Positions 3,910 through 63,600 of a stretch of DNA of 64,000 bases are shown piece by piece. Position 1 is the first letter of the stretch. Every line of letters starts with the position of its first letter. This DNA comes from Guillardia theta CCMP2712 (Eukaryota; Protista; Cryptophyta), in the NCBI RefSeq assembly GCF_000315625.1, contig NW_005434626.1, positions 1-64,000 on the forward strand. The letters run 5' to 3'. The notes under the pieces were generated by a model, which saw only the letters and a program-made list of their open reading frames with translations, was not told the DNA's origin and did not search any database. The translations under genes were made by a program, and so were the position numbers.

Positions 3910-6900
3910 TCATTCGCAGCGCAGGTTCCTGTAGGATACATATCGCTTGTGCCCCTCTGCCGTCCTCAGGTCCATGTACTCCTTCATCAACAGCTGCAGC
4001 TCGCACACGTGCCCCGCTACCCCCAGCTCCCTCGTCCTCTCCGTCACCACCCGTAGGTTCACCGCCACGTCCCTGTACCCCCCCGTCGTCCGCGCGTCGA
4101 AGCTCGGGTCCAGCCTGTTCTTGATCCTCATCACCACGATCTCGGGGTCTCCCAGGATCCGCTCCAGACACTCGCACAGGTCCTCGAGCCGCTCGAAGAC
4201 GATGCACTGCCGCACCACGTCCAGCAGCCTCGACACGTCGTTGTTGTAGGATCGCACGAGCTTCTCCACCGCCCGGTCCACGCTCTTGATCGGCGCCCAT
4301 CGGACCTGCTGCGCGAGGTTCTCGTCCTCCATCGCGTCCTTCCAAATGATGCACTCCAGCCTCCCGTCCAATGCCAGCAGGGAGGAGGGGAAAGAGCCCC
4401 TGGACGCGGCCGCAAAGTCTTGAACCTTCTTGCGGAAGATGGGCTCGACGAAGACTGCTTGTGCGTACAGCTGGTCCAGGGACTCGACTTTTGTGTCTTG
4501 GCTCATCTTCCACACCCCCTTCTTGGACAGAGCGCTCCTGGAGTTCCTCCTCTTCATCCAGTCGAGAGGAAGTGACCATGTCTCCAGCAGGCAGGAAGGG
4601 TCGTGCACTCGGCTCTGGATGACCCTGTTAGGCACGCGGTGTAGCGCGACAAGCTCGGAGATGCGCTGCAAGGCCTGCCTGTTCTCCTCGTTGGAGCAGA
4701 GGGAGTTCCAAAGGTCGTTGTACTTGCGCTGCTCTATCTTGATATTCCTGGAGGCCTTGAACAGATGGAATCTTCTGCCAGCATGGAAGTAGAGGGCAGT
4801 GATCATGAGGATGAAGTTGCTGTAGCCGAACTGATCCTCACTCACGGGGTTCCTGTACAGATTCGAAGAGGATGCTGAGCCCCCGATCCCCGTCCACGCG
4901 CAGTAGAACGGCAGGACAGTCATCATGTACCTCTCCTGCAGCTCGATCACCAGGCCGAAGGTGAAGTCGCCGGTCCCCCAGAAAAAGGAGGCTATTCTGG
5001 TTCCAATCCTGTCGAAGTTGCCGATGAAGATGAGCAGGATCTCCCAGACTCCCACGACGTGAAAGAGCGAAGCAAACAAGGTCTTGGGCAGACTCTGGAA
5101 GCCCAGCCTTGCCGTCACCACTGCCCCGACACAGGCGAACGGTTGAAAGAATACAAACACGGTGGATGCTATGTACATGGCCCGAAGCTGAACCGTGAAC
5201 TCCAACGTTCTCCCCCGGAGACCCGAGGGATCGTTGCAGATTTCCGCACTCGGGGTCGACTCACATGAAAATATCGTCCACTCCTTCCACGACGCTGCTG
5301 GCAGATCGAGGGGGTCGACGCCAAGATCGATCGGTGAGTCCAAGATGTCAAACTTGAAAGCTACCGGGTCAAGACCCGCCAGTTGCTCGTTGCTGTCGAG
5401 GGTGAAACGCCAGCCGTTCGACAGCGCTGGCAAGGAGAAGAAGAAGTAGCGAGTGGTGTTGGCATCCTTAAACGAGGTCGGATAGTGTTTCTTGCAACTG
5501 TCGTACACGAGGGTGAAGTTTGATACCGAAGTTGCGGGGATGAAGTTGCGGACGACTTTGTCGCGAAATTCCAGTATTTGCATCCGTCCTACGTGGACGG
5601 AGGAAGCGTTGTTTTTTAAGAATCCCCTCATGTGATCGGGGGTAACGTAGAAGTAGAAGAGGAAGGCTGCCGCAAGGATAAGCGTTGCCTGCGTAATCTT
5701 CTTCTGCAACGCGTTCCTGACGGGGTTTGAAGAGAAAATGATGCTCGAAGTCATCGTGTTCTGGATCCCTCCCACGATGCTATTCAGCTTCTGATCCATC
5801 ACTCCTCCCGGATACTTGCTCATCTCGGTAAGGAACAAAAAATGCAGGTCAGATTCCCTTTCGCGGGTTTGCAAGAGAGTGTCTGACTGCCGTCGCTGAT
5901 CCGTCGAGAAGAGTCTGGTTGCGAATTGGTTCAAGTAGTCATTGATGAAGGACATCTTTGTCTTCTGCATGAGGTTCACCATCAAATGGACTTTCTCTCT
6001 CCCAACCCATCCCCTGTCGTATCTCACTATGTGTTTCACTCGTCGGTATCGCAGCCGCCTCTCCTGAGTCGAAAGCGCCTGCATTCCCAGTATCGCGAGC
6101 CGCAGCTCGCACACGTGCCCCGCTACCCCCAGCTCCCTCGTCCTCTCCGTCACCACCCGTAGGTTCACCGCCACGTCCCTGTACCCCCCCGTCGTCCGCG
6201 CGTCGAAGCTCGGGTCCAGCCTGTTCTTGATCCTCATCACCACGATCTCGGGGTCTCCCAGGATCCGCTCCAGACACTCGCACAGGTCCTCGAGCCGCTC
6301 GAAGACGATGCACTGCCGCACCACGTCGAAGAGCCTTGACGACTCCCCGTTACACAGATAGAGGACCTTCTCGATCGCTCTGTCCACATTCTTGATCTTG
6401 GGCCACTCGTAGCTTTCCCTCAAGTCTTCGTTGCCCATGATCTCATCAACGCGCTGATACTCTCTGGGCTGATTGCGATGTGCTCGTATTGGTATCATCC
6501 CATTGGTCTCTGCTGCATGCACATGGGCCTTCTCTCTGAAAATAGGCTCCACAAGGATTGCTTGCGCATACAACTGGTCAAGATTCTGGATGATCCCCGT
6601 CACCGATCGTTGTTGGATGCCGGCTGGCTCCTGATGTACACTCACGGGGAGACAGGGTGTGCATGGGGTCAGGCAAAACATCCTGCAAAGCTGCGATCTC
6701 CAGCTTGTCCAGCAGAGCCGTTGCGACTCGTTCTCCTCCACTTCTGCGACACTAGCACTAGTTGTAGCAACGTTGTTGGTTCGGTCACACAAACGCTGCA
6801 CGGCCTCCTGGTTCTCATCGAGTATCTCTCCCCACTTGCTCGTGAAGACCTTGAAGTCCTCTCTGATCGAATGCTCCGCCCACCTCTTGAAAACTTGCCG

Positions 6901-7828
6901 GAGTCCGAGGAAAGCAAAAAGCAGGAAAACGGCAACGATGGACTGATAGGAAACGATCCATGCTAGCGAAGCGAAGAAGTAGATGAGGCATGATAGTATG
7001 CTCAGCTCTACCACGTTCGACTCACTGAAGAGGAGTGGACAAGGGAAGAGAAGCACGTCCTGCCAAAACATTCAGTCATGCCGCAGACAAACAAAAGGAG
7101 AGAAGTGTTTTGACTTCACCTTGATAGCCACGACTAGGAAGAGAAACGACGGCGTTCCAGCCAGAGTTTCCTTGTACTCAGCGTTCAATTCCAACTGCAG
7201 GAAGATCAAGAGGCAAACAACAGCGTCGAGTATCCCCATCACTCCAAAGACCTGCTCCGTTGCGTCAGACAAGACCTCCACCCATGCTCCGCTTCACCTT
7301 CCTAGACAGGTGCGCTCTCTGCAAGACGGAGCAAACCAACGCAACGAGCAAGGCAACCGGGGGGATCAGCCGGCTCAGCAACTCCAGACGGGTGCCCCAA
7401 CCGCATGCGCGGTCCCCCCTCAATTCGTTGGGGTTCTGAATAATGTGGTAGGCGGTCGAATCGGCGATGTACAGGCCTTGGGATCGGAGAGCAGTGATTT
7501 CATGTATCCGTACTGCCATCCATGGAACAGACATGACGAATGCAAAGATTTTGCCAATCTTAGAAGACATGAACGCCGTGATCGGCTCCCAGGAGTACAG
7601 GAATAGGGTCGGCTCATGCTGATAGGCGAGCCTCTTCTTCAGCTCCAGACCCATGAAGCCCCCAGGGAGCTGCGTGTGCAGCCGTACAAAGGCATGCACA
7701 TAGGACGCACGGTTGATCACAAAGATGGCCGAGTCATTCTGAAACAGCCGGATCCCATAACTCGTGTCCTCTTCCGGTTCAATGCCTGCATCCTCCGCGG
7801 AGGCTCTTGAAATCGTATCGCTGAGCAT
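3910..7828 (-). CDS. Polytopic membrane protein with two RelA/SpoT (RSH synthetase)-like nucleotidyltransferase domains
   Basis: Three exons join in phase via introns 7252-7297 (46 nt) and 7060-7119 (60 nt). Two copies of IKxVDRAxEK...DVVRQCIVF...RIKNRL...GGYRDVAVNL...HVCEL(R/Q)L resemble the RSH synthetase motifs RxKxxxSxxxK, DxxGxR, GYxSxH and EIQ. Two hydrophobic multi-TM blocks. Start codon uncertain. Confidence 0.8.
3996..4221. repeat. 226-bp direct repeat, copy in the C-terminal RSH-like domain; identical to 6102-6327
   Basis: gcagctcgcacacgtgcccc...cactgccgcaccacgtc matches the second copy base for base by eye. Confidence 0.95.
6102..6327. repeat. 226-bp direct repeat, copy in the first RSH-like domain; identical to 3996-4221
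   Basis: Same sequence as 3996-4221; the flanks diverge immediately. Confidence 0.95.
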
Positions 7829-8319
7829 GGCAAGACAGACGCCCTCTACCCACCCCACGACAAGACAACCACCCGACTCACAGCTGCATCACTTCTGGTG
7901 CAGCTTGAGTCCCACGATCATAGAGAGCAAAATCCCCTTTGCCACTCAGTCCCATTATGCCCGCTCAGCTCTGACACCATGACCTTGTCGGTGACAACTT
8001 CTTCCAATGTCCTATCCATGTCCAACGGGTTTTCATAACCCTTCAACACATTCCTTACTACCTTTTCTGTTGTCCCCCCCCGCCCCCCTCCCCTCCCAAG
8101 TTCCTTCGGTTATCTTGGCCCTTCAATCCTTCTCTGATACCCACAATCATCACCTGGAAGCCTTAATCCCTGCCAACTACCCTCGTCATTCCTCCACGAC
8201 ATCTATTTGTCAAATCTCTCCCTCCTCCTCCTCCTCCTCCTCCTCTCTCTCTCCCTCCGCCCTACCCCTTCCTCCCTGCCGCGCCCATGGTCATGGCTCT
8301 GAAGAACCAAGAACGAGAC

Positions 8320-10184: not shown

Positions 10185-12578
10185 CTAGGCCTTCCACTCT
10201 GACGGAGGGCTGAGCCTTCTTGACGGGTACAGGAGAGGCTCCTCGAATACTCCCCCACCAGCCTGCATGCTGACAAGTGAGGCAGGCGGCGCGTCGTCGG
10301 TAGGCTCATCGTGTTTGGCTTGTGCCTCCTGCCTCCTTCCCGACGTCGTCGAAGCCCTATCATCCTGAGTCAGCCCTGACGCCTGAATAGCGTTAGTCTT
10401 CTTGGAGGGATAGAGGGAGATGTTTGCGCGGCCCTCGTGAGGGCGGTTTCGATCGTCAGCGCCCTGGGGCGACTGAGGGAGGGCAGAGGTCGCGTGCTCA
10501 AGGTTGGAGGAGACGTTGCGAGGAGACACGCCGTTGTCTGAGCTGCCATCGGCGCTCAGGAAGTCGTCGTACAGCTTCCTCCTGATAGCCATCGAGGTCC
10601 TAGAGGTGTTCATGTTGTCGCTGCGGTTGAACTCCCGCCCACGGTGCCGGGTCTCCGGGGCTCGCCAGACCCGAACGTCCTCCCTTCTCTTGAGCTCAAC
10701 TTGGATGTCTTGCCTCTGGTCCATGCAAGTGCTCCACAACAGCCTGAAGTCCTGGTCATGCTCCAGCATGCTCCTTGCCCCAGACTCCTCGCGCAGCTCC
10801 AGGTAGTAGAGCTCGACATCTTCGTCGCAGACCTCAAAGTGCCGGAGGATCGCGCTCAGCACTGTCTTCAAGGAAGGAGGCTCGTCGTTGAGCAGCGTCA
10901 GGCTATACACTGACCCCGCGTGGTGTGCGTGAAGGGCCACCGGACCTGGTAGGAGCGTCAGATTGCAAGGGAGCGAGGGCTGAAGTCACGGAGCCACCTT
11001 GATTCACCGGGTTCGACATGTTCCGGATCAGGTGGCAGATGTTGGTCTTGTGCAGGCTGTGAGCCGGGCCTCTCGCGCTCTCGCTCCCTGTCTTCCCTCC
11101 ACTGTGAGACGCCTGGCCAACCTCCTTGACGCTCCTCTCCTGGTGCAGCAGCCTCGTCCCTGTGGTGCGATCGATGCACTTGTGGGGCCATTGTCGGCAG
11201 GTCTGCGACTCTCTCCTCTCGCTCTCCCTCATCTCGTTCCCTGGATCCTTCTGAGTGGCCGGAGGATTCAGTGCGGGGGAGAAAACGGGGCCTAGCCCAA
11301 GGCTCGTCGGAGCTCCAAAGGAGGCGCCCGGGGTCTTGGGGGAAGAGGAGTTGGAATCGTTTAGCCCCTGCGAGGCGTCAGCAACTTCAGCCATCAGGTG
11401 TGGGTCCCACCATGTTGAGGTTGTCCAGCCTCTTGAGGTTCGGGTTCTGCTTCAGCAGCTCGGTGATGAACACGGCGTTCATGACATGCTGATAGTCCAG
11501 CGTGATCGACGGGGACAGGCGGAAGTGCTGCTCTCATCAGCCCCCGTCAGGACGGCAAGAGCAAGGAAGCTGTCTCCCACCTGCACATCGACCGTGTCCT
11601 CGGCCGACGTCAGGGTGACACGGAGGAGGGTGGAGTTGTTGCCGACGTACTGCCCCATGGCTCGGACACCCTCTATTTCAAGGTGGTTGCCGTGCAGAAA
11701 CAGCTCCTGCAGCGACTCGTTGACGCTCAAGCTCTTCCCGAGGAACAGAGCTCCCTTGTCGCACACCTGCCGCTCGCATGTCACGCAGTGCATACTCGCG
11801 AGCCCCGTGCCGTCAGGGCGCCGCTAACCTGGTTCTCAGCCATGTCGAGACAAGTCAGGGGGCAGCCCTTCACCTTCAACAGCTGGCTAATCGCGTGCAC
11901 CCCCTTGTCACAGATGGAGTTTCTCCTCAGGTTCAGAGCAGTGACGCTCCTCTTGCTCTCTCTCAGCGCCTTCACGACGTGTGCTCTGCGTGCAGCCGTC
12001 AGTACCACCCAGCACCACGAGACGATGGGAGGGCCGCACATCCCACTCGACGTCAGGAGGTTATTCGCCACGTTCATCGACGTCAGCATGGAGCAGGAGA
12101 GGAGGATTCGCTCTAAAGCATGCGCGCTCTCGTCCGTCGCCCTGTTGCAGTCCAGGAACAGCTCCCGTAAGCAGCCGCCCTCCTCCAACGCATGTGACAC
12201 CCGATGCACTCCCCCGTCGCCGAGGAGACAGCCGCTCAAGCGCAAGCTGGTCAACGACTGGGAGGAGGCGACGAGTCCTTGAAGAGCGATGATGGACTTT
12301 GGGCCGACCTTGTTCCTCCCCAGCTCCAAGACCTTCACGTCGTCTCTCCTTCTCACCTCTTCCAGTAACGTCGCGATCTCCTCATCGCTCAACCCCTGAC
12401 CCCAGACGTCCACTTGTCCGTTCCCATCGTTCAAAGCCTGGAGTACGGCATGGACTGAAGCCGATCCTCCTCCTACCCTCCAGCTAGTTGTTTGCGGAGG
12501 ACAGGGTTGAGACTGAGCACCTTGGTCCTGTGTCTCTTTGAAGGAGGAAGGAAACCAGTTCATAAGTGGTTTTAACAT
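10185..12578 (-). CDS. RNI-like leucine-rich repeat protein with a C-terminal PB1-like domain (multi-exon)
   Basis: About 28-aa LRRs (VKVLELGRNKVG, LTSLRLSGCLLGDGG, LRELFLDCN, VTALNLRRNSICDKG, LTCLDMAENQ, LQELFLHGNHLEIEG). The last exon has VYSLTL...LKTVLSAILRHF...VELYYLE...LEHDQDFRLLW...IQVEL, a PB1-like pattern. ATG at 12578 (MLKPLMNWF). Confidence 0.75.
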
Positions 12579-13433
12579 CCTTCTCCTCCTCCTCCTCTCA
12601 CCTCCTCCTACCTCTCCTCTTCCTTCACCTTCACCTCCTCCTCCTCCTCCTCTTCTCGGCTCTAACCTCTCAGGAGCTGCATCGATGTCTAATTGGGTCT
12701 GAGGAGGAGGTAGGGGTAGTATGCCACTAACGGGTAGGGGTAGTGGCCTGGGTACGATGGTCAGAACGGAATATGACGGAGGGTGGAGTGGGGTAGGCGA
12801 GGGAGGATTAGGGGGTGGGGGTGGTCTTGAGGGAATCAGTACTTTGTTGGACCCGGAAAAATTTTGAGAGAGGAGAGAGGGAGGGGAGGGGAGGGGAGGG
12901 GAGGGGATCAGAGGAGAGGAGATCAGAGGAGAGGGGAGGGGAGGGGAGGTAAGAGGAAGGCAGAGTAGCTTGCCAATTGTTCGGAAGACGAGAGACGTTG
13001 CGGTAGATAATCTGAGATAGGGAGAAGATGAAATTGCCGGAATTGAGAGCTTTGAAAGGGTGACGACGAACCATGCTCTTATCAGTCTATACCCGCTCAT
13101 GTCCTTGCTCTCGATCTTGCCAAGCAAAGCAGGCGCAAATTGAGTTTGTGTCTGAAGGAAGGAGGCATTGATTAATATTCAGAAGGCAGAACGCGTGTCT
13201 CGTTATAGCTCAGGAGTCACTGAAAAAGTGATCGGAACCCCCCTGAAAGATGTATCGCATGACACCTAGGGCATGAGCATCCTCCTTACCTTGGAGTCTC
13301 CACGAGCGTCAATGCGCATGAACTGCCTTGTGACAGGGCCAAGCTTCCACAGACAGTCATTCACGATCTCGATATACAAATAACTCTCAGCCCGACAAGA
13401 CATGAAATCAATTTATTTAGATACAAAAACCCA

Positions 13434-29429: not shown

Positions 29430-30269
29430 ATGGGTTCTGATGTTCCTCTAAGGACTGGATCTATTTTGAAAATCGACGGAGCTTGAGCTTGTAATTTTTT
29501 TGGTTTCCTGCAACCTTGTCTTGGTACAATGTAAGTTGCCTTCTAATCTTGTGTGGGAGCTGACCGCAAAGCAATAGAATGAGTGAAAAGGACCATCATG
29601 TCAAGTGGGATGAAACCAACTTGGAGTACAACGAGCAGAACAAGTGTGCAACTATGAAAATTGACGAACCGCCTACTCCTTTTAACTTCGAATATTGCGA
29701 AGATGAAGTGGATGAAGAGCATGGTTCGACCCTGACCTGTTCTTTCCTTTTGCCTCTGACCTGATTCAACACTCTATCAGCAGCCAAAGCATCCTTGTCT
29801 TTTGCCGACCAGTGGAAGCGCGAGGGGATGGATGAGATTATCAACGACCCGGAGAAGTTGAAACCGTCGTTTGAAGCCTCGGAACCAAGTGAGGCAATTG
29901 GGATGTGGAGGGGCTTGCCTCTTACTGGTCTATACAGCCGAGGAAGACCTTGCGGAGAAGAAGAAGAAATTCGAAGAGATTCGCAAAGAGCACTATCGGA
30001 TCAAGAATCCGCTCGCAAATCATGTTCAATTCAACGAAGACAACAATGAAGAGCACGAGGTAGAGGATGAGAAACAAGGTGAGCTTCTTGTTCGCCCATG
30101 GTCGAATGACGTGCCGGCTTCAGAAGAGGAGGATGCTGAGACCAAGCACGAACTCTTCGTCAAGAAAAGGAAGGCGTTCTATGCCGAACAAGACCGTGAA
30201 GCAGCTGAGCGAGCCAAGGCCATGGAAGCTGACGGAATGGCCTCCGAGGACTCCGAGGGGAATGACTGA
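29430..30269 (+). CDS. PPP1R2: Protein phosphatase 1 inhibitor-2 (IPP-2/GLC8 family), multi-exon
   Basis: SILK motif (MGSDVPLRTGSILK), HVKWDE, MKIDEPPTPF (IDEPKTPY phospho-Thr motif) and KKKFEEIRKEHY helix. Confidence 0.9.
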
Positions 30270-31219
30270 AGTTTGAAGAAGCTTATACGGTACATGTCTA
30301 GGTATACACGATTGAGAAGCTCGTGTGGAATCATGTACTGCTAAACCGACGGACAGCCGCAAGCTTTCGACTGTCTCNNNNNNNNNNNNNNNNNNNNNNN
30401 NNNNNNNNNNNNNNNNNNNNNNNNNNNNNNNNNNNNNNNNNNNNNNNNNNNNNNNNNNNNNNNNNNNNNNNNNNNNNNNNNNNNNNNNNNNNNNNNNNNN
30501 NNNNNNNNNNNNNNNNNNNNNNNNNNNNNNNNNNNNNNNNNNNNNNNNNNNNNNNNNNNNNNNNNNNNNNNNNNNNNNNNNNNNNNNNNNNNNNNNNNNN
30601 NNNNNNNNNNNNNNNNNNNNNNNNNNNNNNNNNNNNNNNNNNNNNNNNNNNNNNNNNNNNNNNNNNNNNNNNNNNNNNNNNNNNNNNNNNNNNNNNNNNN
30701 NNNNNNNNNNNNNNNNNNNNNNNNNNNNNNNNNNNNNNNNNNNNNNNNNNNNNNNNNNNNNNNNNNNNNNNNNNNNNNNNNNNNNNNNNNNNNNNNNNNN
30801 NNNNNNNNNNNNNNNNNNNNNNNNNNNNNNNNNNNNNNNNNNNNNNNNNNNNNNNNNNNNNNNNNNNNNNNNNNNNNNNNNNNNNNNNNNNNNNNNNNNN
30901 NNNNNNNNNNNNNNNNNNNNNNNNNNNNNNNNNNNNNNNNNNNNNNNNNNNNNNNNNNNNNNNNNNNNNNNNNNNNNNNNNNNNNNNNNNNNNNNNNNNN
31001 NNNNNNNNNNNNNNNNNNNNNNNNNNNNNNNNNNNNNNNNNNNNNNNNNNNNNNNNNNNNNNNNNNNNNNNNNNNNNNNNNNNNNNNNNNNNNNNNNNNN
31101 NNNNNNNNNNNNNNNNNNNNNNNNNNNNNNNNNNNNNNNNNNNNNNNNNNNNNNNNNNNNNNNNNNNNNNNNNNNNNNNNNNNNNNNNNNNNNNNNNNNN
31201 NNNNNNNNNNNNNNNNNNC

Positions 31220-31740
31220 ATATAGGGGGTGCAAGTTTTACAGGGGGGTAGGGGTACTCCACAAGAGCTTTATGGGGTGCAACAAGGAAGGATACCTCTG
31301 TACCGGTAGATTGTAGGGGAAAATAAGGGTGGTATCTGATGGCGGAATCGTAGAAGGGTGTACCCCTGCCTTGTTAAACAGATGAGGTAGGGTGGAGTAA
31401 AACCTGCATGATCACTGAGAAAATGGGGGGTGATGAGAAGAGGCTTGCAGGGGTGGGGGGTTAAGATAAGTGCTGAGCGAAGGGGTGGGGTTATAATACG
31501 GTAGTGGTCACCTCCGCTTTGAATGTAGGGAATGGGATAACAATAGTAAAAGCGGGTAGGGTGGGGCTATGGAGAACCGTGGGTGGGAGGTCCTGGACAA
31601 TATCTGATTCATGTGACCTCAAGGTTGGATATTTGTAATGTGTACCCATAGAAAAACAGGGATGGGTATTCACCTCACCCCTCATGGGACAAAGGGCCTG
31701 CAACCCCACCTCTCACCATCAGACCCCCCTACCCCTGAGT
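31220..31740. promoter_or_regulatory. GGGGT/ACCCC-rich island upstream of lpxC
   Basis: Dense ggggt, gggta and taccc words, no real ORF. Confidence 0.35.
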
Positions 31741-44450: not shown

Positions 44451-44511
44451 CAAAACAGTCTTGAACCTGAAGATTGCTGAAAATCCGGATTAGTTGGCAT
44501 CTACACTAGCC

Positions 44512-46626
44512 ATGGCTGAAATGAGCTTTGCCCCGCGCATGCGCGCGGCTCGAGGCCCTCCAACCAAGCAAGAGATGAACGAACAGGGACTGTTGGGGGT
44601 GCTGGGGTTGAACGACACCTTCAAGTTCATGCAGGGGTGTGTTGCCTCGAGGCCGATCGCAAGCGATTCCGACGCGCTTCTGGTTGTCGACTTCCCTGAG
44701 AGGCCAGCGAAGATGTTGGCGGTGGCTCTCCCTGACTACGGCAATCCTGCACTGCTCAAGACGCAGCTCTGCGACCTCCCTCGACTGCCGATGGGAAAGT
44801 TGAAGCCGACCGAGGTTGTCGTGGAGGTCTTCGCGTCCAGTGTAAACCCTACGGACTGCAAACAGAGGAAAGGCACTCTGTCGACCATCTGCCCCTTGTC
44901 TCTTCCCTGCATCCTCGGGATAGACTTCAGCGGCAGGATCGTGAGGAACGGGGAGGACTCGCCCTTCAACGTTGGAGACGAGGTGTTCGGTCGCCAGACT
45001 CTGGATCGCATGAGGGAGCTGAATGGAACATACGCGGAGTATTGCATTGTAGATTGTTCGGATATTGCTCTCAAGCCTACCAACCTCTCGCACGATCAGG
45101 CTGCTGCCGTCCCTCATGCCTGTCTCGCTGCCTACTCGTCCCTTGCTCACGTTGGGAACCTGTTGGAGAAGAAAAGGCAGAGCGACAAGGCTGTGCTTGT
45201 CCTTGGGGGCAGCGGAGGCGTCGGGAGCTTTGCTGTTCAGCTTGCAAAGAGACATTTCAACTGCTACACTGTTGCCAGCTGCTCGAAGAGGAACATGGAC
45301 TTCGTCAAGTCGTTGGGAGCGGACGAGGCCTGGGACTATACTGACGCGTTCTTCCTCAAGAGCGCCGGCCTCACCAAGTTCGATGTGATCCTCGACACGG
45401 TGGGAGGTGATGACTACTGGAGCGCGTTCCGAGGCTCCTTGTCGCACAATGGCGTGTACGTGACGCTGGTTGGGAATGCGCGCCACCTGGCAGATGAGAA
45501 GAGTGTGGACTGGGGTAGCATGCTGGAAATACGAGCAGACTATCTTTTCCGTCAGATCTCCAACAAGCTCGGAGCTGCAGAGAACTACCACATCCTGACA
45601 GGATCTCAGATCCGGAGTAGCGACCTGAAGATAATTTCCTCGCTGCTGGAGGAGGGCACTCTGCGAGTGATTGTGGACAAGACCTTCAGCATATATGACA
45701 TCATCAAGGCCCACGAGTACTCGGAGACCCATCACGCCGTGGGAAAGATCGTGTTGCAGATCAAGCAGAGTGGTGCCGACAAGGCAGGGGGGGAACAGGT
45801 GAGAGAGATAGTCTGCCATGTCTGCGATCTTGCGGCGGAGTCTTATCCGTGCCCCAGGTCAACGGAGTGGTGATGGACGAGCGATGGCAGCTCCCCATCA
45901 GCAAGTCAAAGGTCCGTCGCATCTCGTGAGCTCCTCGTGTTTGACTGGTGCGTGCAGAAGAAGCCAGAGGCCTCCGGGTCCAACTCCATCGGCAAGGGAG
46001 TGACCTTCGACAAGTTCAACCCTCCGGGCCTGGACTCGCCTGCTCAACCCGACAAGGGCAATCAGCCTGACTTCCTCTTCTCCTCCCCCACCCATGTCGG
46101 GAACTCAGCGCCTCCTCCGTCGTTGCATCAGGACGACGAGGTCGCTCCTCCTGCTCATGCTGTTCTTGGAGGACTCGGCCTCCGCCCTGGCGAGCTCGCG
46201 GCGAAGCGGTCGCCCTCTGTTCTTGATGCGCGGCCCATGGGAAGATTGGGGAAACAGACCGAGGACATAGTAAGGGGGGAGAGGGATAGATCGTTGCTGC
46301 TGAATGGCGGGAAGGAGGAGGCTTACAACTTGTCGGATATCTTTGCGCAGAAGAGCAACAGCATCAGCAAGGGGCTTCCTCTACCGAAGGGACGAGTGGA
46401 GGAGAAGGAGGAGGACGCTGATGTGGAGGACCTGACTGCGAGACTGGACGCACTTCATCGTGAAGTTGCTGAGTCGGCAGCGAGAGTGCAGCAGCTGAAG
46501 TCACCGGCTTCGTTGAACCAAATCTCCTCCTCCCCCTCTCCTTCCTCCTCCTTCAACGCTTCCGAGCCATCCCTCGTACGCCGTCGAATCGAAGAGCTGT
46601 CCAAGGGGAGCGGAACAACAGCGTGA
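44512..46626 (+). CDS. MDR-superfamily NADPH:quinone oxidoreductase-like (RTN4IP1-like) domain plus a low-complexity extension
   Basis: EVVVEVFASSVNPTDCKQRKG, ILGIDFSGRIV, VGDEVFG, GTYAEY, VLVLGGSGGVGSFAVQLAK, AHEYSETHHAVGKIVL. Two phase-0 introns link this to the 45958-46626 exon. Confidence 0.9.
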
Positions 46627-52800: not shown

Positions 52801-53419
52801 CGCTTTCCCCTGCCACGCCAGCCTCCATGCTGTCATGCCTTGTCTGACGCTTCTCTTCCACCAGCACCAGCACCAGCAGCAGCTCCAGCAGCAGCTCCTG
52901 CTCCTCGCTCTCCTCCCTCTCCTATCTCCTTTCTCCACCCCTACCTCCTCCCTCCCTTCACCTTCTCGCTTCCTTCCATCATCCACCACATCTCCCCCAC
53001 CCGTTTCACTGAACCTCCCTTCCTCAACCTCCACTGCCTCCCCTGCACAACATCATGCCTCTCCAGAGCTCGCAGAACAGTGATTTTATCTCTTGATGAC
53101 GCTGATTTCTTTATTTTTGAAGAATCTCTCCTCGATCGTTGCCTTGATTACTCTGTTTTGGTCTTTTTGGTGTGACACATTCAACTTCCTCCTTGAGCCC
53201 TCAGAGGGCAGAGAGCTTCCTGTCCTTGGAAGAGTTGACTTCCTGTGTTCAAACTTCACAGCTCGCCTCCATCCTTCCCTTTAGCACACGCTGCCTTCTC
53301 GGCATGAATGCAGAGGGCCTCTACCTCCCTTCCCCCCCCTCTTCTTCACGGCTGTGCGGGTCATCCCGCCGTCATCAGGCTTGATTCGGTTCTCACTAAT
53401 TCTCACAGGAGATCCGGAC

Positions 53420-56396
53420 ATGTCGGAGTTAGAATGGCCCGTGTCCAGAGTTCGCAAGACTTTCATCGAGTTCTTCCAGTCCAAGGATGAGAAGGGAGGG
53501 GCTGACGGCGGCCACACGTTCTGGGCCTCCAACAGTGTCGTCCCCTACGATGACCCCACCCTGCTGTTCACCAACGCAGGTATGAACCAGTTCAAGCCCA
53601 TCTTCATGGGCACCGTCGACCCCAAGAGTCCGCTCGCCCCTCTCAAGCGAGCATGCAACTCGCAGAAGTGCATCCGCGCGGGAGGCAAGCACAACGACCT
53701 TGACGACGTGGGTAAGGACGTGTACCACCACACCTTCTTCGAGATGCTCGGCAACTGGAGCTTCGCCACCTACTTCAAGAAGGAGGCCACGGCCTGGGCA
53801 TGGGAGCTCCTCACCAACGTGTACGGCCTTGAGCCGGACCGTCTGTATGCCACCTACTGCGAGGGCGACCAACACAAGGGAGGGACTGTGCCGCCTGACG
53901 AGGAGACGCGTCAGCTGTGGCTCCAGTACCTCCCCCCTGAGCGAGTGCTCAAGGGAAACATGAAGGACAACTTCTGGGAGATGGGAGACACTGGGCCCTG
54001 TGGCCCTTGCACTGAGCTGCACTACGACCGTATCGGAGGAAGGAACGCTGCTCACTTGGTGAACATGGACGACCCCAACGTGCTCGAGATCTGGAACGTG
54101 GTGTTCATCCAGATGTTCCGCAACAAGGATCAGTCGCTGAGCATGCTTCCCGGCAAGCACGTGGACACCGGGATGGGGCTCGAGCGCATCACCTCGATCC
54201 TGCAGGGCAAGATGTCAAACTACGACACAGATATCTTCACTCCCATCTTCGACGCGATCCACAAGAGAACTGGCGTCAGGCCCTACACCGGCAAGGTGGG
54301 CAAGGACGACAGCGACGGCATCGACATGGCGTACCGCGTGGTTGCAGATCACATCCGCACCCTGACCATCGCAGTGACGGACGGAGCTCAGCCTGGCAAC
54401 GACGGGAGGAACTACGTGATCCGCCGTATCCTCCGCAGAGGAGTCAGGTACGCCAGGCAGTACCTCTACCCTCCCGGCACGCAGTACGAGGCTGGCTTCT
54501 TTTCCAGCTTGTCCTCCATCGTGGTCGACGTGCTCGGGGAGGCGTTTCCCGAGCTGAAGGGCAACCCAGGAGTTGGCATGACGCCCGAGAAGGTGGCTTC
54601 CATCATCTTGGAGGAGGAGGTGTCGTTCCTGCGCACCCTCGACAGGGGTATCGCCCAGTTCGAGAAGTTTGCCGAGATGGACCAGTCGGCAGGAAGAATC
54701 AGCGGCGAACATGCGTTCATGCTCTACGACACCTTCGGGTTCCCCGTGGATCTCACGCTGCTCATGGCGGAGGAAAAGGGAATCTCCGTCGACTCTCAGG
54801 GCTACGAAGAGTGCATGGAGAAGCAGCGCGCGAAGTCGCGAGGTGAAGCAAAGGAGGGAGAGGTTGTGCTGGTACTGGAGGCCGAGCAGACCGACAAGCT
54901 GGCCAAGGAGCTGGGAGTCGTGGCCACCGACGACTCGACCAAGTACGACTGGACGTCAGCTGGCAGCGGGCCACGAGGAAATGCGACGGTGAAGGCGATC
55001 TGGGACGGCAAGGAGTTCCTGTCGGAGGCGAAGGAGGGGACTTACTGTGGCCTAATCTTCGACAAGACCAACTTCTACGCGGAGGCCGGAGGACAGCTGT
55101 TCGACACTGGCCGCGTCACCACCTCCGAGGCCGTGTTCAACGTCCAGAACGTGCAGAAGTTCGGAGGATACATCCTGCACTCGGGCAACCTCGGGTCAGG
55201 GTCGGTCAAGGTCGGGGACGCGGCTGAGCTGGACGTGGATTATGAGAGGAGATCGCTCATCGCCTCGAACCACACCTCCACTCATCTCCTCAACTTCGCC
55301 CTCCGCAAGGTGCTGGGAGCTGACGGGGCGGTGAACATCGACCAGCGCGGCAGCATCGTGGGGCCGGACAAGCTGAGGTTTGACTTCTCCTACGGGAAGC
55401 CGATGAAGGTCGAGGAGGTGGAGCAGGTGAGGACGCTGGTGCAGGAGCTGATCCGAGGAGGCTACCCGCTGCAGAAGAAGGAGGTAGCACTCTCTGCGGC
55501 CAAGCAGATCAAGTCGCTGCGAGCTGTGTTCGGAGAGGTCTACCCCGACCCCGTCCGAGTCGTCAGCGTCGGGCCAGTTCCCCACTCCATCGACGACCTG
55601 CTGGCTAAGCCCGATAGCGGCGAGTGGGAGAAGCTCTCGGTCGAGTTCTGCGGAGGAACGCACATGGACAACACCAAGGAGGCGGTCGACTTCTCGATCC
55701 TCGGAGAGGAAGGGACGGCCAAGGGCGTCCGCCGCGTCGTCTGCGTCACACGGGATGCGGCGAGGCAGGCGAAGCAGGCGGCCGAGGACTTTGACGTGCG
55801 CGTGGCAAACGCCGGCAGCATCACGGACATGAGCGAGCTGGACCGGGAGATCTCGAGCATGCGAACAGACGTGGACGCGATCGTGATGGACTATGTGAGG
55901 AAGGATGCGATCAAGAAGAACATCGACAAGCTGAAGGACAAGGTGCTCGCATGGGAGAAGCAGATCATCAAGGAGAAGACGGACTCGGCGCTTCGATGGG
56001 CGGAGGCGCTGGAGGTGAGCGGCAAGTTTGTGGTCGAGGAGGTGGACGTGGACGGAGACGTCAAGGCGATCGATGCGGCCATGAAGACCATCAACACCAG
56101 GGCACCGGCTCTTCCCGTCTGCCTCCTCTCCCGCTCCTCCAAGGGCGACAAGGTCTCTTGCCTGGCTGTGGTTCCAGGAGGAGCTGGAGGCCTGGACGCC
56201 AAGGACTGGATCAACGCGGCGCTCGAGAAGTGCGGCGGCAAGGGTGGAGGAAAGAGCGACCGCGCTCAGGGAGCCGCCAAGGTCTTTCTGCTGCTGCTGC
56301 CGTTGCCCTCTGACTTTTCTTGCCCAGGATGCCAGCGGCTTCGAGCAGGCGGTGGCAGCGGCCAAGGCATACCCGGCCAGCAAGGGTCTCGCCTAA
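53420..56396 (+). CDS. AARS: Alanyl-tRNA synthetase, eukaryotic type
   Basis: LLFTNAGMNQFK, QKCIRAGGKHNDLDDVG..YHHTFFEMLGNWSF, DNFWEMGDTGPCGPC, VDTGMGLER, editing motifs HTSTH and EFCGGTH, GKGGGK. One intron at 56282-56327, then DASGFEQAVAAAKAYPASKGLA*. Confidence 0.97.
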
Positions 56397-56434
56397 AGCT
56401 CCTGCTATCTTGTTATAGACCTGAGGCCTCCCAT

Positions 56435-58950
56435 TCATTCTCCTCCTCCTCCCTTTCCTCCTTTCGCTCCCGGTAGCATCGAGAGCCGTCGGAAGATCTT
56501 TCGGGCATGCCCGGCCTTGACGCCCATAATGAGCAGGTCGTCCTCCCCTGCCATCACGTCAGCCGCTGCCTCCTCTTGCTCTATCGCACCCATGGCGGCA
56601 ACGGCCTCGAGAGAGTCCCAGCCGTGCTCCAGGAACGCGGGAGCGTACTGCCCTAGCCCGAGCTCACCCAGCCATCCCACCACCGCCCACTCGCCATCTC
56701 CTCCCACAGCCTCGCGCTGCTTGGTCGCGCTCACGGGGGTGGGAGGAGGAGGAGGCGTGCGAATCTTCCTCGTCGATCTCCCTGGGGTGGAGACAACAGA
56801 TCGCGTGTCTCGGGGGGTCTTGTAGGCATCCATCATAGGAGAGTGAAAACGAACCGTCGACAGGACCTGACTAACCTCAGCTTGGCTCTCCCCTGCCTTT
56901 CGCCCCCTACTCCTTCTCTCTCACCCCCCCTCCTACCCCTTCCCTTCCTCTACCCCCTCCTCCTGCTCCTCACCTGGGTCTCATCGCCCCTGCCTAGTCG
57001 CCTTCTCTCGCCCCCTGCATCCCCCAAGTCCGACGAGTCGTCTTGACCCTCCTGCTGCATCTGCTGAATCTTCACCAGCCTGTTGACCGAGTGCCGGAAG
57101 TCCCCGAAGGAAGGGCTGCATCCCAACCGTCACAGGGGAGGAGGAGAGGGAGGAGGGAAAAGGAGGAGGGATGAGGGGATGAGGAGGAGAAACGAGTCCC
57201 CACCTGGAACTCTCGTGCTCGAGCTCAGACGTCTCGTCCTCCTTCCGCGGCCTGCAACGCAACTCAGCGGCGCGAGGCAGAGCAGGACATACGCTATGTG
57301 AGGGGAAGGAAGTTTGAGAGGACGGGGAGTCTGACGGACGTCTTCAGGGCCCATGCTGACGAAAACCTTGAGGGACAAGCAAGTTAGAGGTAGGATCACA
57401 AGCGACGGCAGAAGAGAGGAGGAGGAGGAGGAGGAGGAGAAAGTCTATAAAGGTAGAAGCTAAAGCTCATGTTTAGGTTTCCATAGGGACAGGCACGGGA
57501 AGGAGGGAGGGAGGGAGGGAGGTGATGGTGGAGGAAGAGAAGTGTTTCACATGCTCGGGGTCGTCCACTTGAGCTTCTGCTGACAGCTCCCACTCTCTGG
57601 CTCGCTGTGCAGGTTCAGATCAAGCAGAGCTTCTCCCCGTAGCAACCTCCTCCCTGCTCGTCGAGACCTCCATCTCGTCTGCAAGATCCTCCTTCTTCAT
57701 CCCCCCATCCTCCGCCGCCCCGATCGCGGGAACAGCTAGCAGGCGGTCAGTCCGAAGATCACCAGCAACATGAGGCAGGCAGGAGGTGGAGGGATGAGAG
57801 AAGAGAAGGCGGTTCTATCACCTGGGGTGTGCATGGAGGTAACGCAGTGCCATCGCCCGCTTGCATCCTTCACCCCATCCACAACTCCTACCTGCCAGAG
57901 CAGCGTCACCGACGGAGCAGGAGCCTCAGCCCTGACCTCGTGCAGACAGTCCCGCAAGACTCCCACACACCCTGGTCCGCTCAAGGGATCTCGAAGGGTC
58001 AAGGAGCACTGCTCAATGCTGCCTCCCAGCGCAGTTGAGAGTCCCTTGGAGCCCTCCAGCCTCTCCAGGCCGTTCACCGCTGCCTCAGCAGCAGCTGTGA
58101 AAGGTTCAGGGAGCTGCTACAGCGGGAGGAAGAGAGGAGCTACCATTGGCGATGTCCTGCATGACGGAGCCCTCCACGACGTCATGCACAACGAGGACGT
58201 CCAGGTACATGAGATCCCCCAAGGTCTCCTCCATCCACCTGCCCTCTCTCCGACTCTGCAACAGCAGGTGGCTGGAGCGCATTGGGGGATCATGGAGCTG
58301 CGAGCAGAGGGGAGAGATGAGGAGCACCTGAAAGACACGGCGAACATGCCAGGCCGAACGACCTCGGAGGCGGATGCATGGACGTGTGCTATCAGCACGA
58401 TCCCCGCCTGACTCTCCTGTCACTCTGCTGTCCCTCGACCTGATCGCGCACCTGAGGCTGCCTGCGCACAACGTAGAGAGGGAGGGTGAACGATGTTCCC
58501 TCCTCCTCCATCGAAAGTTCTGCAGCACCGCACGTGCAAACGTCAGGCAGTGCCTTCACGAGCAGCGACAAGTTACCGTCATGCCGCCTCGATTCTCGTC
58601 GCCCGCTCTTGAAGAAGTCGTCATGCACAACCAACAACGTCGAGACGGAGAGTCACCTGCTGTATCCCCCCTTGCAGCCTCATCGACCTGGGCAACACAC
58701 CGCCCCCCTGCCTCGCGTGAGGCGCCAAATTCACCATCGTGGATGTGGACGAGAAGGGCAGGGAGGAGGCGAACAGAAGCAGCACCAGCACCAGCAGAGA
58801 CAGAAGCATGTCACTGTTAAACTTGTTCCTCCATCCGTTGCTGTATCAGATTTCACGTTTTCTCTCCTCTTGCGTCTCCCGACTGATCCGCTGCTGGACT
58901 CTTGCGATCGCTCACCATCTCAACCCGCGATCCCTCATACCATCCTCCCT
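56435..58950 (-). CDS. Multi-exon protein with a C-terminal SAM domain
   Basis: VVGWLGELGLGQYAPAFLEHGWDSLEAVAAM|GEDDLLIMGVKAGHARKIFRRL is a typical SAM domain. Upstream exons are unrecognised and the start is uncertain. Confidence 0.65.
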
Positions 58951-60639: not shown

Positions 60640-63600
60640 ATGAACACGGACGATGGTTCAAGTGCCCGACTGGAATCCTTCTACGAGGTTGAAAACTTCT
60701 CCGAAGCTATCAGCGACCGTCAGAATGGCGCGCATTCTACCGGCATGGACGGGCATGCGTCGGATGCGCACAAGTTCGATGCGGGTCCCGCAGTTGGTGA
60801 GGATAATGTGCTGTTGTCTTCTCTGCTCCCCGTAACGATCTACTTGAACTAGATGCCGCGGAGAAGCAGAAACAGAAGGTGGATCCCAACCCTCAGTACT
60901 GGCGCAGACATGTTGGCCATACCGATGGGACGCTGGACATGCTTTTTGCGCCCAATATGACTCGGATGTACGTCAGCGGATCCGAGCACGAGGAGACCCC
61001 GCAAGAGGAGGTATCAGAGACAAAGAGGAAGACAATATCTGCTTTCCAGAAGGTGAAACTGATCACTGCATGGGCGAAGAAGGGCAAGTTCCTCAACGGG
61101 AGCAATGGATGGCACTCTCCCCTGAAATCTCCCAACAGGGGTTCGAAAGTTGCTTCGACCCCTGTTGAACCAGAAGCTGATGCTGAACAAGAGGTTCAAG
61201 AGATAGCTGAAGATGGCAAGGCCCTGGACAGGTTGCGGATAGCTTCCAAGAAGATTGGCATCGCCAAGAAAGCTTTTGGAAAACGCCCTGAACTGAAGCA
61301 GGCTTCATTCGCAAAGAAATTTCCCATCAACAAAGCTCTGCAGCGAGCCGCCCATCGTGTCACGATCGTCAAGGCTTTTGAGCACAACAATCTGTTCTCG
61401 AGGCTTGCGGCTGAAGCGAAGGGCTACATGAACTCTGGATCTCCAACTCTCACCGCTCTCAAGGTTTGTTGTTGCGCTTTCATCGTGACCTGATGTGCAT
61501 GACCTTGGTGTTCAGGCCATCCTCTCCAGCGATCGAACAAATGCGGAGATTATTGAGCTGACGTTTGACTATCCTTCTCTCAAAGCTGAAGTGAAGGCGA
61601 TCTTGAAGAAGGAGCAGAAGGATCGTGAGCGGCGGCTGACGGAGGAGAGGGTAAAGCTGGCTCTTGGAGGGACCAGAAGACCCTCGAGGAGGCCGACGCT
61701 GCATAAGAGCGCATCGCTCATGTCTGACCCGCTGTCGAAATGGTCGCCAGTGGAGATTGACGAGGATGAGCGGAGGAGGGTCCTCGGGTATGGTCAATCG
61801 AAAGAGGAATTCTTGGAGAGTTTAGGGGGCAAGGCGGATGTGACGGCGAATCAAGTGGTTGTTGCTCGCCTCATGCAAGCCCTGTCAGACCTGAACAACA
61901 GCCAGGAATCTGACACTTCGAGACTGCATCTTCTCAACTTCTACAAATGCTTTCACCCAGACTCAAAGTTTGTTGACATTTGGACAATAGTTTACGTGAT
62001 GTTGATCCTGTACATAGCGACGATTGGAATTTACCGAACTACGTTTGTTGAGATTCCCTCCTCTAACTGCAACCCTGCTTTCTCCGAGTGGGATTGGTTC
62101 GACTTTTCCGTGGATGGATTTTTCTTGATTGATGTGCTGCTTCGAACATTCCTGTTCGGTCAATTCGGGAATAATAATGCTTCCACATGGGAGAACTCAG
62201 AAGCGGTTTTGGAGCCATCGAAAGTGATTGTAATGTACATGAAGAACGGTATGTTGGTGGACACCATCACGAGCGTTCCGATTCAATGGATTGTCATGTT
62301 CGGAGTCCCTAGCTGTAACACGTCCAACAGCTCCCAGTTGCTCTACTTGCGTTTGCTGCGTCTATACAGATTAACTCGCATCTACAAATTGTTCCAGTCA
62401 TACAAGATCAAGAGCTGGCTACGTTACTTGAAGAGGCGGATAGGAAACAACAACATTCTGCAGATGGTCAATTTAGCTATCGTGGTGATGTCGATCAATC
62501 ACATCTGGACGTGCCTCTCGTGGCTGGTCCAGTCGACCGACAGCACCATTGATCCGGCATCTGGTCTCTCAGGGTTTGAGCAATACCAGACCGCCATCGG
62601 TCTGCAGCTAACTGCCTCGCCGTTCCAGCAGTACTCTGTCTCATTCATGGTCACTCTTCAGATCATGTTTGCCATCGATCCCTACAACGCTACCACGACA
62701 CCTGAAGCTTGGTTCGGCGTCTTGACTGTCTGCCTGAGCGTCGTCATCAACGCGACGATGTTGAGCAAAGTGATTGAGATCTGGGAGACGATCAACAGGG
62801 CGCAGACAGAGAGAGACAACAGGATCAATGCGGTGATGGAGTTCTTGCGATCCAACGGGATCGACGGGATGCTGCGCAACGACATCTTGGATTACTTTGA
62901 GTTCAGATACTCAAACGAGCACTTTGATGTTGAGAAGAAACTCCTCGATGAGTTGCCGACGGAGATGCAATCGCGGGTGATACACAAGATCTTTCCTCGG
63001 GCTCTCGATTCATGCTACCTCTTCACGGGAGCAAGTGAAGGCTTCATCGCACAGTGCGTCGTACGCATGGCTCGTCGGCCGCTGCGCACGATGCCAGGGC
63101 AAGTGATCACGGCAGAGGGCACTTTGGGCTCGGAGATGTTTCTGGTGAGCTCTTGTTGCGATGCCACACCAACTGACCGATGTCTCTGTAGCTCAAGTCG
63201 GGCTCAGCCGAGGTGTCTGTCCAGGACGTCGGAGGGAAGCCCAGGGGCCTCGGGCTGATCGGGCCTGGCCAGTGCTTCGGGGAGATCTCCTTGTGGATGG
63301 AGTCGAGGAGGACGGCAACGGTGACGTCACTGGACTACTGTCAGCTCTTCATGCTCGCCAAGGAAGATCTCGAGAACGTACTCGATCGCTTCCCCGAGAT
63401 GGCTCCCTCCATCGCCACTTTCGCCATAGCCCCGATTCTCCGCACGAAAGAACTCGTCCCCAGCATGGAGGGCCTTACGCAGTATGCTGCTGAGCGGATT
63501 GCAAGGAGAATGGCATTCAATCGGGAGGATTTCGCCGATGGTAATCCCTCCTCCTGTCCCGTGCCCTTCCTGGAGCTACCCTCTTCGCCCTCTTCCTCCC

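Follow-up and report, generated by a model that had tools for sequence, protein, structure and literature searches.

Can a synthetase domain of the RelA/SpoT homologue (RSH) superfamily be the output of a eukaryotic membrane protein? The question is raised by a gene on the minus strand, at positions 3910-7828, of a 64,000-nucleotide stretch of DNA from the cryptophyte Guillardia theta CCMP2712 (positions 1 to 64,000 of contig NW_005434626.1, assembly GCF_000315625.1), hereafter called the window. Eukaryotic alarmone synthetases are known as plastid enzymes inherited with the organelle, plus scattered and unexplained "divRel" genes. A preliminary description, made from the sequence alone, had proposed that the gene encodes a protein of two modules, each composed of a transmembrane (TM) bundle and a RelA/SpoT-like catalytic domain, in a layout resembling that of the adenylyl cyclases. 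The analysis reported here leads us to the conclusion that the window protein is a new architectural variant of RSH synthetases.

Two RSH synthetase domains in one chain

The claim of tandem RelA/SpoT-like synthetase domains is supported, in both fold and motifs, by profile searches, Foldseek and VIA-align. An exhaustive phmmer search with domain 2 matched 2,382 cluster representatives with E <= 1e-3, of which 218 had E <= 1e-30, and many of the matched proteins are 1,000-1,700 amino acids long with two matched stretches each. When a profile of 44 family sequences was compared with the sequences in the PDB, the top two matches were Tas1 (6ox6, E 0.001) and RelP/YwaC (6fgk, E 0.0024). The K..K..R helix, the Asp motif and the GYR motif of the family are in register with those of Tas1 and RelP, and its 'APIKS.ERA..K ... 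D.AR' stretch is spaced as in Tas1. An AlphaFold2 (AF2) model of domain 2 built on the 44-sequence alignment reached a predicted local distance difference test (pLDDT) score of 90.6. Searched against the PDB with Foldseek, this model had only RSH synthetases among its 50 best matches (probability 0.95-1.00), including RelP (E 6.7e-6), Tas1, CapRel, FaRel2, RelSeq and RelA. VIA-align, which is independent of Foldseek, superimposed the model on RelP with Z 11.0 and a root-mean-square deviation (rmsd) of 2.8 A over 153 residues, followed by RelQ (Z 10.0), CapRel (9.8), Tas1 (9.8, 23% identity) and the exported small alarmone synthetase (SAS) of Streptomyces (9.6). RelP and RelQ, the enzymes with which the preliminary description had proposed comparison, are the best structural matches, and their synthetase fold, shared with RelSeq, is an alpha/beta nucleotidyltransferase fold. 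Since profile matches, AF2 model, Foldseek and VIA-align all agree, it is established that the domains have the RSH synthetase fold and motif set, outside the curated Pfam family.

This last point is in accordance with the scores. The window protein misses the gathering score of PF04607 RelA_SpoT (27 bits) and belongs to a divergent branch, not to the members of the curated model; paralogue P0006 attains 25.4 bits against the same cut-off. In favour of the RSH assignment, 15 of the 44 family members have a sub-threshold match to RelA_SpoT (E <= 0.1, the best 3.2e-4), and no second family recurs among them. Some paralogues carry the automatic UniProt name 'RelA/SpoT domain-containing protein', which indicates that the domain link is already latent in the databases. 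As had been claimed, no HD, TGS or ACT domain is found by Pfam in the window protein. A match to DHR-2_Lobe_B (E 0.098) was dismissed as noise.

A duplicated membrane unit

The protein is an internal duplication of one whole unit, with twelve TM helices predicted in total. Each unit consists, in this order, of a pre-TM segment, a first helix (TM0), an outer loop, a five-helix bundle, a long juxtamembrane helix, a flexible linker and an RSH-fold domain. That the two modules with their TM bundles are homologous was confirmed by hhalign, run on 19-sequence alignments of unit 1 and unit 2 (probability 99.2%, E 8.8e-20, 276 columns spanning the helix bundle and the following helix). A hidden Markov model (HMM) of the unit 2 TM module matches unit 1 at residues 139-343 and also matches unit 1 of many tandem relatives. 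The pre-TM helices, described earlier as similar, are so: a subfamily profile aligns residues 30-137 of unit 1 with unit 2 over its pre-TM segment and TM0 (89%, E 2e-6). Both motifs quoted for these helices, LFLYSWEPITAFMSSK and IIFSSNPVRNALQKK, are present in the protein, LDQLYAQA..VEPIFR.K occurs twice, and IK.VDRA.EK, DVVR, GGYRD and CELR/CELQ were found as well. The same TM module stands before the RSH domain in single-unit relatives of 650-900 amino acids, which indicates that one TM module joined to one RSH domain is the ancestral building block.

An AF2 model of residues 620-1270, based on a 44-sequence alignment (pLDDT 88.2, predicted template modelling score (pTM) 0.79), shows short helices, TM0, a beta-sandwich, five membrane helices, another helix, a linker and the RSH domain. 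The last membrane helix of unit 2 continues for about 20 residues past the membrane. The outer parts of the two units differ in size, the ectodomain of unit 2 having about 140-145 residues with three N-x-S/T sequons (at 705, 735 and 755) and the outer loop of unit 1 only about 40 (111-149). With six helices in each unit, the prediction puts the N-terminus on the cytosolic side, together with the two RSH domains. The placement proposed earlier for both domains agrees with this prediction, with the Lys/Arg-rich segment that follows the last helix of unit 2 (7 in 44 residues) and with the confinement of sequons to the outer loop of unit 2. The TM-catalytic-TM-catalytic layout is thus recovered as a predicted arrangement of six TM helices and a catalytic domain, twice over, which arose by duplication of the whole unit. 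The N-terminus is acidic and has no signal-peptide-like hydrophobic start, in accordance with the plastid presequence having been reported missing.

The TM bundle could not be assigned to a known family: the best fold matches (TMEM45A, Z 8.8; Ste2, 7.7; rhodopsins, about 7) lie below the level that the tool itself regards as meaningful for helical bundles, and the feature search with the TM module gave no usable match.

Active-site residues of the two domains

In the alignment of 44 domains the residues K75, R79, K83, D97, R100, D121, G144, R146 and E170 (domain 2 numbering) are invariant, and Q172, G186-H187 and Y190 are nearly so. Domain 2 of the window protein has the full RSH motif set, K1146, R1150, K1154, R1157, D1168, R1171, G1215-Y1216-R1217-D1218, N1222, H1238, E1241, Q1243, G1257-H1258 and Y1261, and among these K1146, K1154, R1157, D1168, G1215-Y1216-R1217, E1241, Q1243, G1257-H1258 and Y1261 are invariant or more than 90% conserved in the family. 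Domain 1 carries only a part of it. It retains K444, R448, K452, D466, R469, G513-Y514-R515-D516, N520, H536 and E539, with Y455 in place of the basic-helix Arg, R541 in place of the Gln of the ExQ motif and the GH motif gone.

Inspection of 30 non-redundant tandem proteins showed that this difference is not peculiar to the window protein. Domain 2 keeps all conserved positions throughout. Domain 1 has the Mg-binding Asp in 30/30 and the catalytic Glu in 29/30, and both Lys residues and the GxR motif are retained. Its basic-helix Arg (R80) is Arg in just 7/30, its ExQ position (Q166) is Gln in 10/30 and Arg in 12/30, and the GH motif is lost. The asymmetry of ELR in one domain and ELQ in the other, pointed out in the preliminary description, is therefore real and conserved among paralogues. 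It does not follow that domain 1 is dead, because Tas1 carries Asn at the same basic-helix position. The variant C-terminal flank of domain 1 is 55-62% identical among the closest paralogues, and this conservation indicates that the flank is under constraint and not decaying. Domain 1 may bind a different acceptor or may act as a regulator.

Gene conversion confined to the domain core

The two domains of the window protein share an identical stretch of 226 nt that starts in both at the codon of the motif Asp and ends at the first base of the codon by which ELQ and ELR differ (Table 1). Each of 14 of the 18 paralogue loci examined (L001-L013 and L016) has an exact domain 1/domain 2 repeat of its own, 117-391 nt long and spaced about 2.1 kb, and the 3' boundary of the repeat always lies one codon past the catalytic Glu. 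Over 18 genes, the median nucleotide identity of the core is 99.1% between the domains of one gene vs 66% between genes. The C-terminal flank shows the opposite, 41% within a gene vs 61% when domain 2 copies from different genes are compared. Trees tell the same: in flank trees the sequences cluster by domain, those of domain 1 together and those of domain 2 together (8 label changes vs 20.3 expected, a number as low as 8 being reached in 0/500 shuffles), and in the core tree each gene has its two domains either identical or as sisters. Substitutions peculiar to one paralogue occur in both of its domains. The core identity is the result of intragenic gene conversion that is confined to the core, with the flanks staying differentiated.

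An explanation that had to be weighed against gene conversion is that the tandem layout or the 226-nt identity is a mis-assembly of two paralogues, or that the gene is a dead pseudogene. Contigs built from reads do end at the repeat borders, and they disagree with the reference at 4237 and 4267-4275. However, in each of three runs one contig bridges the two repeat copies across the intervening 1.9 kb (4201-6131), transcript contigs connect the upstream exons to domain 1, and the reading frame is intact across 1,270 codons. These observations, together with the separate exact repeats and the shared paralogue-specific substitutions described above, leave mis-assembly or a pseudogene extremely improbable. 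On the strength of the paralogue repeats, the tree pattern and the spanning contigs we attribute the identity to gene conversion, and an assembly artefact as its cause was rejected.

Contigs of three independent runs (one of DNA and two transcript-like) differ from the reference at 4237, 4267, 4269, 4273 and 4275. Four of these five changes convert GACCGGGCGGTGGAG to GACAGAGCGATCGAG, the form that the motif takes in domain 1 (Val1152 to Ile). Either the reference is in error at these positions or another small patch has been converted.

Family and taxonomic range

The census of paralogues in the G. theta genome gave at least 104 matches to the domain profile, about 30 of which are pairs lying about 2.1 kb apart in one long open frame, that is, tandem genes. 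All named relatives that have the membrane unit are cryptophytes (Guillardia, Hanusia, Cryptomonas, Hemiselmis and Rhodomonas), and the rest are environmental sequences. A profile search with the alignment of the unit found five close paralogues in the word-indexed protein collection. Among close paralogues the RSH core (63-64%) and the domain 2 flanks (51-64%) are best conserved, and the ectodomain, TM helices and linkers (17-30%) least. Such a distribution, with conservation highest in the RSH domains and lowest in the ectodomain and TM helices, would be expected if the output is conserved and the input varies.

No Pfam domain was found in six G. theta open reading frames (ORFs) that match the domain profile weakly and in part. 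The HD_4 domain has only two matches in the genome (C47:131263-132737 and C24:131220-132315), both beside canonical RelA_SpoT matches, and these two loci are the canonical long RSH genes, presumably of the plastid.

Gene structure, splicing and expression

The gene is expressed and spliced. The size of about 1270 amino acids given in the preliminary description is exact for a minus-strand gene of three exons, whose joined coding sequence of 3813 nt encodes 1270 amino acids with 0 internal stops (coordinates in Table 1); within the window it is represented by the minus-strand ORFs 3910-7071 (1053 amino acids) and, upstream, 7265-7858. Contigs of two transcript-like runs (X2 and X3) omit 46 and 60 bases bounded by GT..AG on the gene strand, and the DNA run (X1) is unspliced. 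The RNA nature of X2 and X3 is a guess of the tool, backed by these intron-less joints that are not present in X1. Over 4010-7058 and 7298-8200 the transcript contigs follow the genome without a break, which shows that there is no additional intron. Because only 38 raw RNA reads could be placed, mostly within repeats, the evidence for expression and splicing comes from the X2 and X3 contigs. The ATG at 7828 is preceded by an in-frame stop, and the exon junctions are the same in the public model of paralogue GUITHDRAFT_107722. The transcript contig continues unspliced for at least 400 nt 5' of the start codon (7829-8244), and several short upstream frames beginning with ATG are found there.

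The search of public protein collections returned no identical or nearly identical full-length protein. The closest database proteins are GUITHDRAFT models and the best full-length match has just 56-59% identity, so that the window gene may be without a correct public gene model.

Table 1. Coordinates in the window of the exons, introns and protein parts of the gene
Feature	Position	Strand	Remarks
Exon 1	7298..7828	-	residues 1-177; start ATG at 7828; pre-TM segment with PGG motif (predicted cytosolic), TM0 about 88-110, outer loop 111-149, first bundle helix
Intron 1	7252..7297	-	46 nt, GT..AG; joint in X2 and X3 contigs
Exon 2	7120..7251	-	residues 178-221; two TM helices of bundle 1
Intron 2	7060..7119	-	60 nt, GT..AG; joint in X2 and X3 contigs
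Exon 3	3910..7059	-	residues 222-1270 and stop codon; without introns
Unit 1 TM region	6892..7567	-	residues 88-277, six helices, both introns inside; from hydropathy
RSH-like domain 1	6016..6597	-	residues 376-569; family HMM 241.5 bits
Identical 226-nt stretch, domain 1	6102..6327	-	Asp466 to first base of Arg541 codon
Unit 2 pre-TM segment and TM0	5617..5802	-	residues 641-702; AF2 helix 56-83 of model
Unit 2 beta-sandwich ectodomain	5182..5616	-	residues 703-847; AF2 strands 88-224 of model
Unit 2 five-helix bundle and long juxtamembrane helix	4645..5181	-	residues 848-1026; AF2 model, helices 229-253, 259-281, 287-309, 311-333 and 348-391 (model numbering)
RSH-like domain 2	3913..4494	-	residues 1077-1270; family HMM 287.8 bits
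Identical 226-nt stretch, domain 2	3996..4221	-	first base of Asp1168 codon to first base of Gln1243 codon

Surroundings of the gene in the window

Neighbouring ORFs of the window encode an alanyl-tRNA synthetase (53354-56476, plus strand; PF01411, E 2.4e-196), an Ion_trans channel-like protein (61495-63258, plus), a zinc-type alcohol dehydrogenase (44494-45873, plus), an LRR protein (11781-13127, minus) and a TPR protein. None of them has an evident link to the RSH gene, and no immunity or antitoxin partner was seen among them. Just 3' of the gene, at about 2230-2500, ORF translations are runs of X, which correspond to an assembly gap of N. The segment 30001-32000 has a G+C content of 0.285, compared with 0.46-0.61 in the other 2-kb windows, and at 30120-31262 several frames of both strands hold long ORFs, which suggests a low-complexity or repeat block.

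Comparison with known systems

The nearest structures are those of RelP and RelQ (SAS1/SAS2 of Firmicutes), single-domain enzymes of RSH synthetase fold that are the best structural matches and share the K..K..R, catalytic Asp, GYR and ExQ motifs with the window protein. However, identity to them is only 14-17%, they have D-x-x-G-x-R where D-x-x-R is found here, and they lack the additional N-terminal 'LDQLYAQA' helix. They are also soluble bacterial homotetramers, whereas the window protein has the domain twice per chain, each time as the output at the C-terminal end of a membrane unit of six helices. Tas1 of Pseudomonas aeruginosa (6ox6) is a (p)ppApp-synthesising type VI effector that drains ATP. 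It is the best match among PDB sequences (E 0.18 with the single sequence, 0.001 with the profile) and has the highest identity of all fold matches (23%, Z 9.8), with the same spacing of 'APIKS.ERA..K' and 'D.AR'. Nevertheless, it is a secreted bacterial toxin accompanied by an immunity protein, and the protein described here is a eukaryotic polytopic membrane protein with no partner seen. The exported Streptomyces SAS (8vx3; Z 9.6, 18% identity) is likewise an RSH-fold enzyme outside the classical stringent response, but it is a secreted soluble bacterial enzyme and no membrane protein.

The resemblance to class III transmembrane adenylyl cyclases is of a different kind. Those enzymes also have two six-helix bundles, each followed by a cytosolic domain (here according to the predicted topology), and homologous but unequal twin domains, one canonical and one variant, that come from duplication of a unit of TM and catalytic parts. 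There is no relation in sequence or fold, as no match to Pfam Guanylate_cyc was found and the folds are those of RSH. Cyclases form their active sites where C1 and C2 meet; the RSH enzymes of solved structure each have theirs inside a single domain. The likeness proposed in the preliminary description is therefore one of topology and of unequal twin domains, and not one of descent or, judging by the solved RSH enzymes, of the construction of the active site. That interpretation stands as to fold, layout, predicted sidedness and asymmetry.

Among eukaryotic RSH proteins, the plastid RSH1-4 and CRSH are also nucleus-encoded members of the superfamily, but they are soluble, plastid-targeted and equipped with HD, TGS/ACT or EF-hand parts, and the window protein has neither these nor a presequence. 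More similar in composition are the divRel enzymes surveyed by Atkinson et al. 2011, who reported divergent synthetase-only RSH in fungi, Dictyostelium and two diatoms, and some eukaryotes with a synthetase-only RSH but without a small alarmone hydrolase (PMC3153485). Like the window protein these are synthetase-only, lie outside the plastid Rsh1-4 groups and have no accompanying hydrolase; unlike it, they were described with no transmembrane or tandem layout, and the survey described no cryptophytes (PMC3153485). In the literature on RelA/SpoT in Guillardia or in eukaryotic transmembrane receptors we found no description of this architecture. The algal RSH literature concerns plastid enzymes, and the remaining work retrieved is bacterial or plastid.

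Proposed function and alternatives

What is the protein for? Catalytic residues that have been kept, a position predicted to be cytosolic, outer parts that vary and the repeated use of one output domain in many membrane proteins lead us to regard it as a sensor-type membrane protein with an RSH nucleotide output and a member of a cryptophyte family of receptor enzymes, a reading that we hold to have an even chance of being correct. Catalysis, product, ligand control and signalling role are what we infer in it. Domain 2 would be an active pyrophosphokinase that takes the beta-gamma pyrophosphate from ATP and attaches it to a purine nucleotide at the 3'-OH, and its product would be a (p)ppApp- or (p)ppGpp-like nucleotide in the host cytosol. 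Domain 1, having the same core and other flanks, would either have a regulatory part beside domain 2 or be an enzyme whose specificity for the acceptor has changed. Activity would be set by the membrane part together with the ectodomain, so that the whole would be a sensor with a nucleotide output. It is possible, with a probability that we place somewhat below even, that the cryptophyte receptor enzymes constitute a eukaryotic second-messenger system with a 3'-pyrophosphorylated purine as output, parallel to the cyclases and their cAMP and cGMP; equally tentative is the extent of such a system, which would take in about 30 tandem receptors, each pairing a canonical with a variant domain, and further single-unit receptors in one genome.

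Several results weigh against the sensor reading and have to be set beside it. Pfam assigns no family to the window protein (no RelA_SpoT match at E <= 1). Sequence significance relative to solved RSH proteins is borderline, at E about 1e-3. Nor does the sequence reveal the substrate, and Tas1, CapRel and FaRel2 are all among the solved proteins nearest to it. A linker of about 35 residues with low model confidence (424-457 in model numbering) intervenes between the juxtamembrane helices and the RSH domain, so that a rigid path for a signal is not evident. The ectodomain gives a weak lead to a galactose-binding-like sandwich (BT0290, Z 6.5, rmsd 2.2, 91 residues), with which a comparison with F5/8 type C agrees at a score of 0.80, below significance. 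The contact test between domain 1 and domain 2 gave a score of 0.00, which, controls not having been run, speaks neither for nor against binding, and the pairing of the two domains is neither supported nor refuted. Finally, the HD_4 search of the genome found no stand-alone hydrolase of the Mesh1 type by which a product made in the cytosol could be removed.

The same chemistry could serve a different end. A Tas1-like domain that, once triggered, converts ATP and ADP to (p)ppApp would drain the adenylate pool, and the family would then be a set of sensor-coupled switches of growth arrest or cell death, for example anti-viral or in self/non-self recognition. Tas1 is indeed the best sequence match in the PDB with the single domain as well as with the profile, has the top identity among the structural matches (23%) and spaces the 'APIKS..RA..K' and 'D..R' motifs in the same way; the large lineage-specific expansion with fast-evolving outer parts is as in immune-type receptor families, and the genome search revealed no dedicated cytosolic hydrolase. 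However, the fold score for Tas1 is no higher than for housekeeping small alarmone synthetases, no immunity-type partner or death-domain fusion was seen for the window gene, and transcript assemblies contain the spliced gene at an appreciable depth with no sign of harm. We consider such a depleting effector unlikely. The acceptor could also be something other than a free nucleotide. CapRel, FaRel2 and PhRel2 are pyrophosphokinases that act on the 3' CCA end of tRNA, and a domain modifying this end, or another non-nucleotide acceptor, might shut down translation near the membrane. This would be in accordance with CapRel (Z 9.8) and FaRel2 being among the fold matches, and the differences between domain 1 and domain 2 at acceptor-side positions indicate that acceptor specificity is evolvable in the family. 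On the other hand, the top matches by fold and sequence (RelP, RelQ and Tas1) use nucleotide acceptors, a tRNA-binding extension is not evident, and domain 2 retains the Tyr of GYR(D), which in small alarmone synthetases (RelQ/RelSeq) stacks on the acceptor base. Modification of a macromolecule thus appears improbable.

There is also the question whether the domains catalyze anything at all. One or both could be pseudo-enzymes forming a nucleotide sensor or scaffold, and the protein would then be a transporter or channel regulated by cytosolic nucleotides. The three family-conserved positions missing from domain 1 could be taken in this sense, and so could the large bundle of 12 TM helices, for which the fold search gave nothing beyond generic 7TM-like matches (TMEM45A Z 8.8, rhodopsins Z about 7). 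Yet domain 2 keeps its invariant charged residues, including the Mg-binding Asp and the catalytic Glu, across more than 2,000 sequence clusters, which makes a non-catalytic domain 2 hard to accept, and even domain 1 has kept Asp and Glu in nearly all tandem proteins. To a purely non-catalytic role we give as small a chance as to the modification of a macromolecule.

Significance

In G. theta, the RSH synthetase domain is the conserved output, predicted to be cytosolic, of numerous membrane proteins that form one expressed family and vary in their outer parts. The same family offers a clear natural example of concerted evolution that is limited to a domain. If the domains are active, nucleotides of the (p)ppNpp type would be made in a eukaryotic cytosol under the control of receptors, or a sensor would trigger a drain of ATP. 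In either case, the known outputs of receptor enzymes would extend beyond cyclases and kinases.

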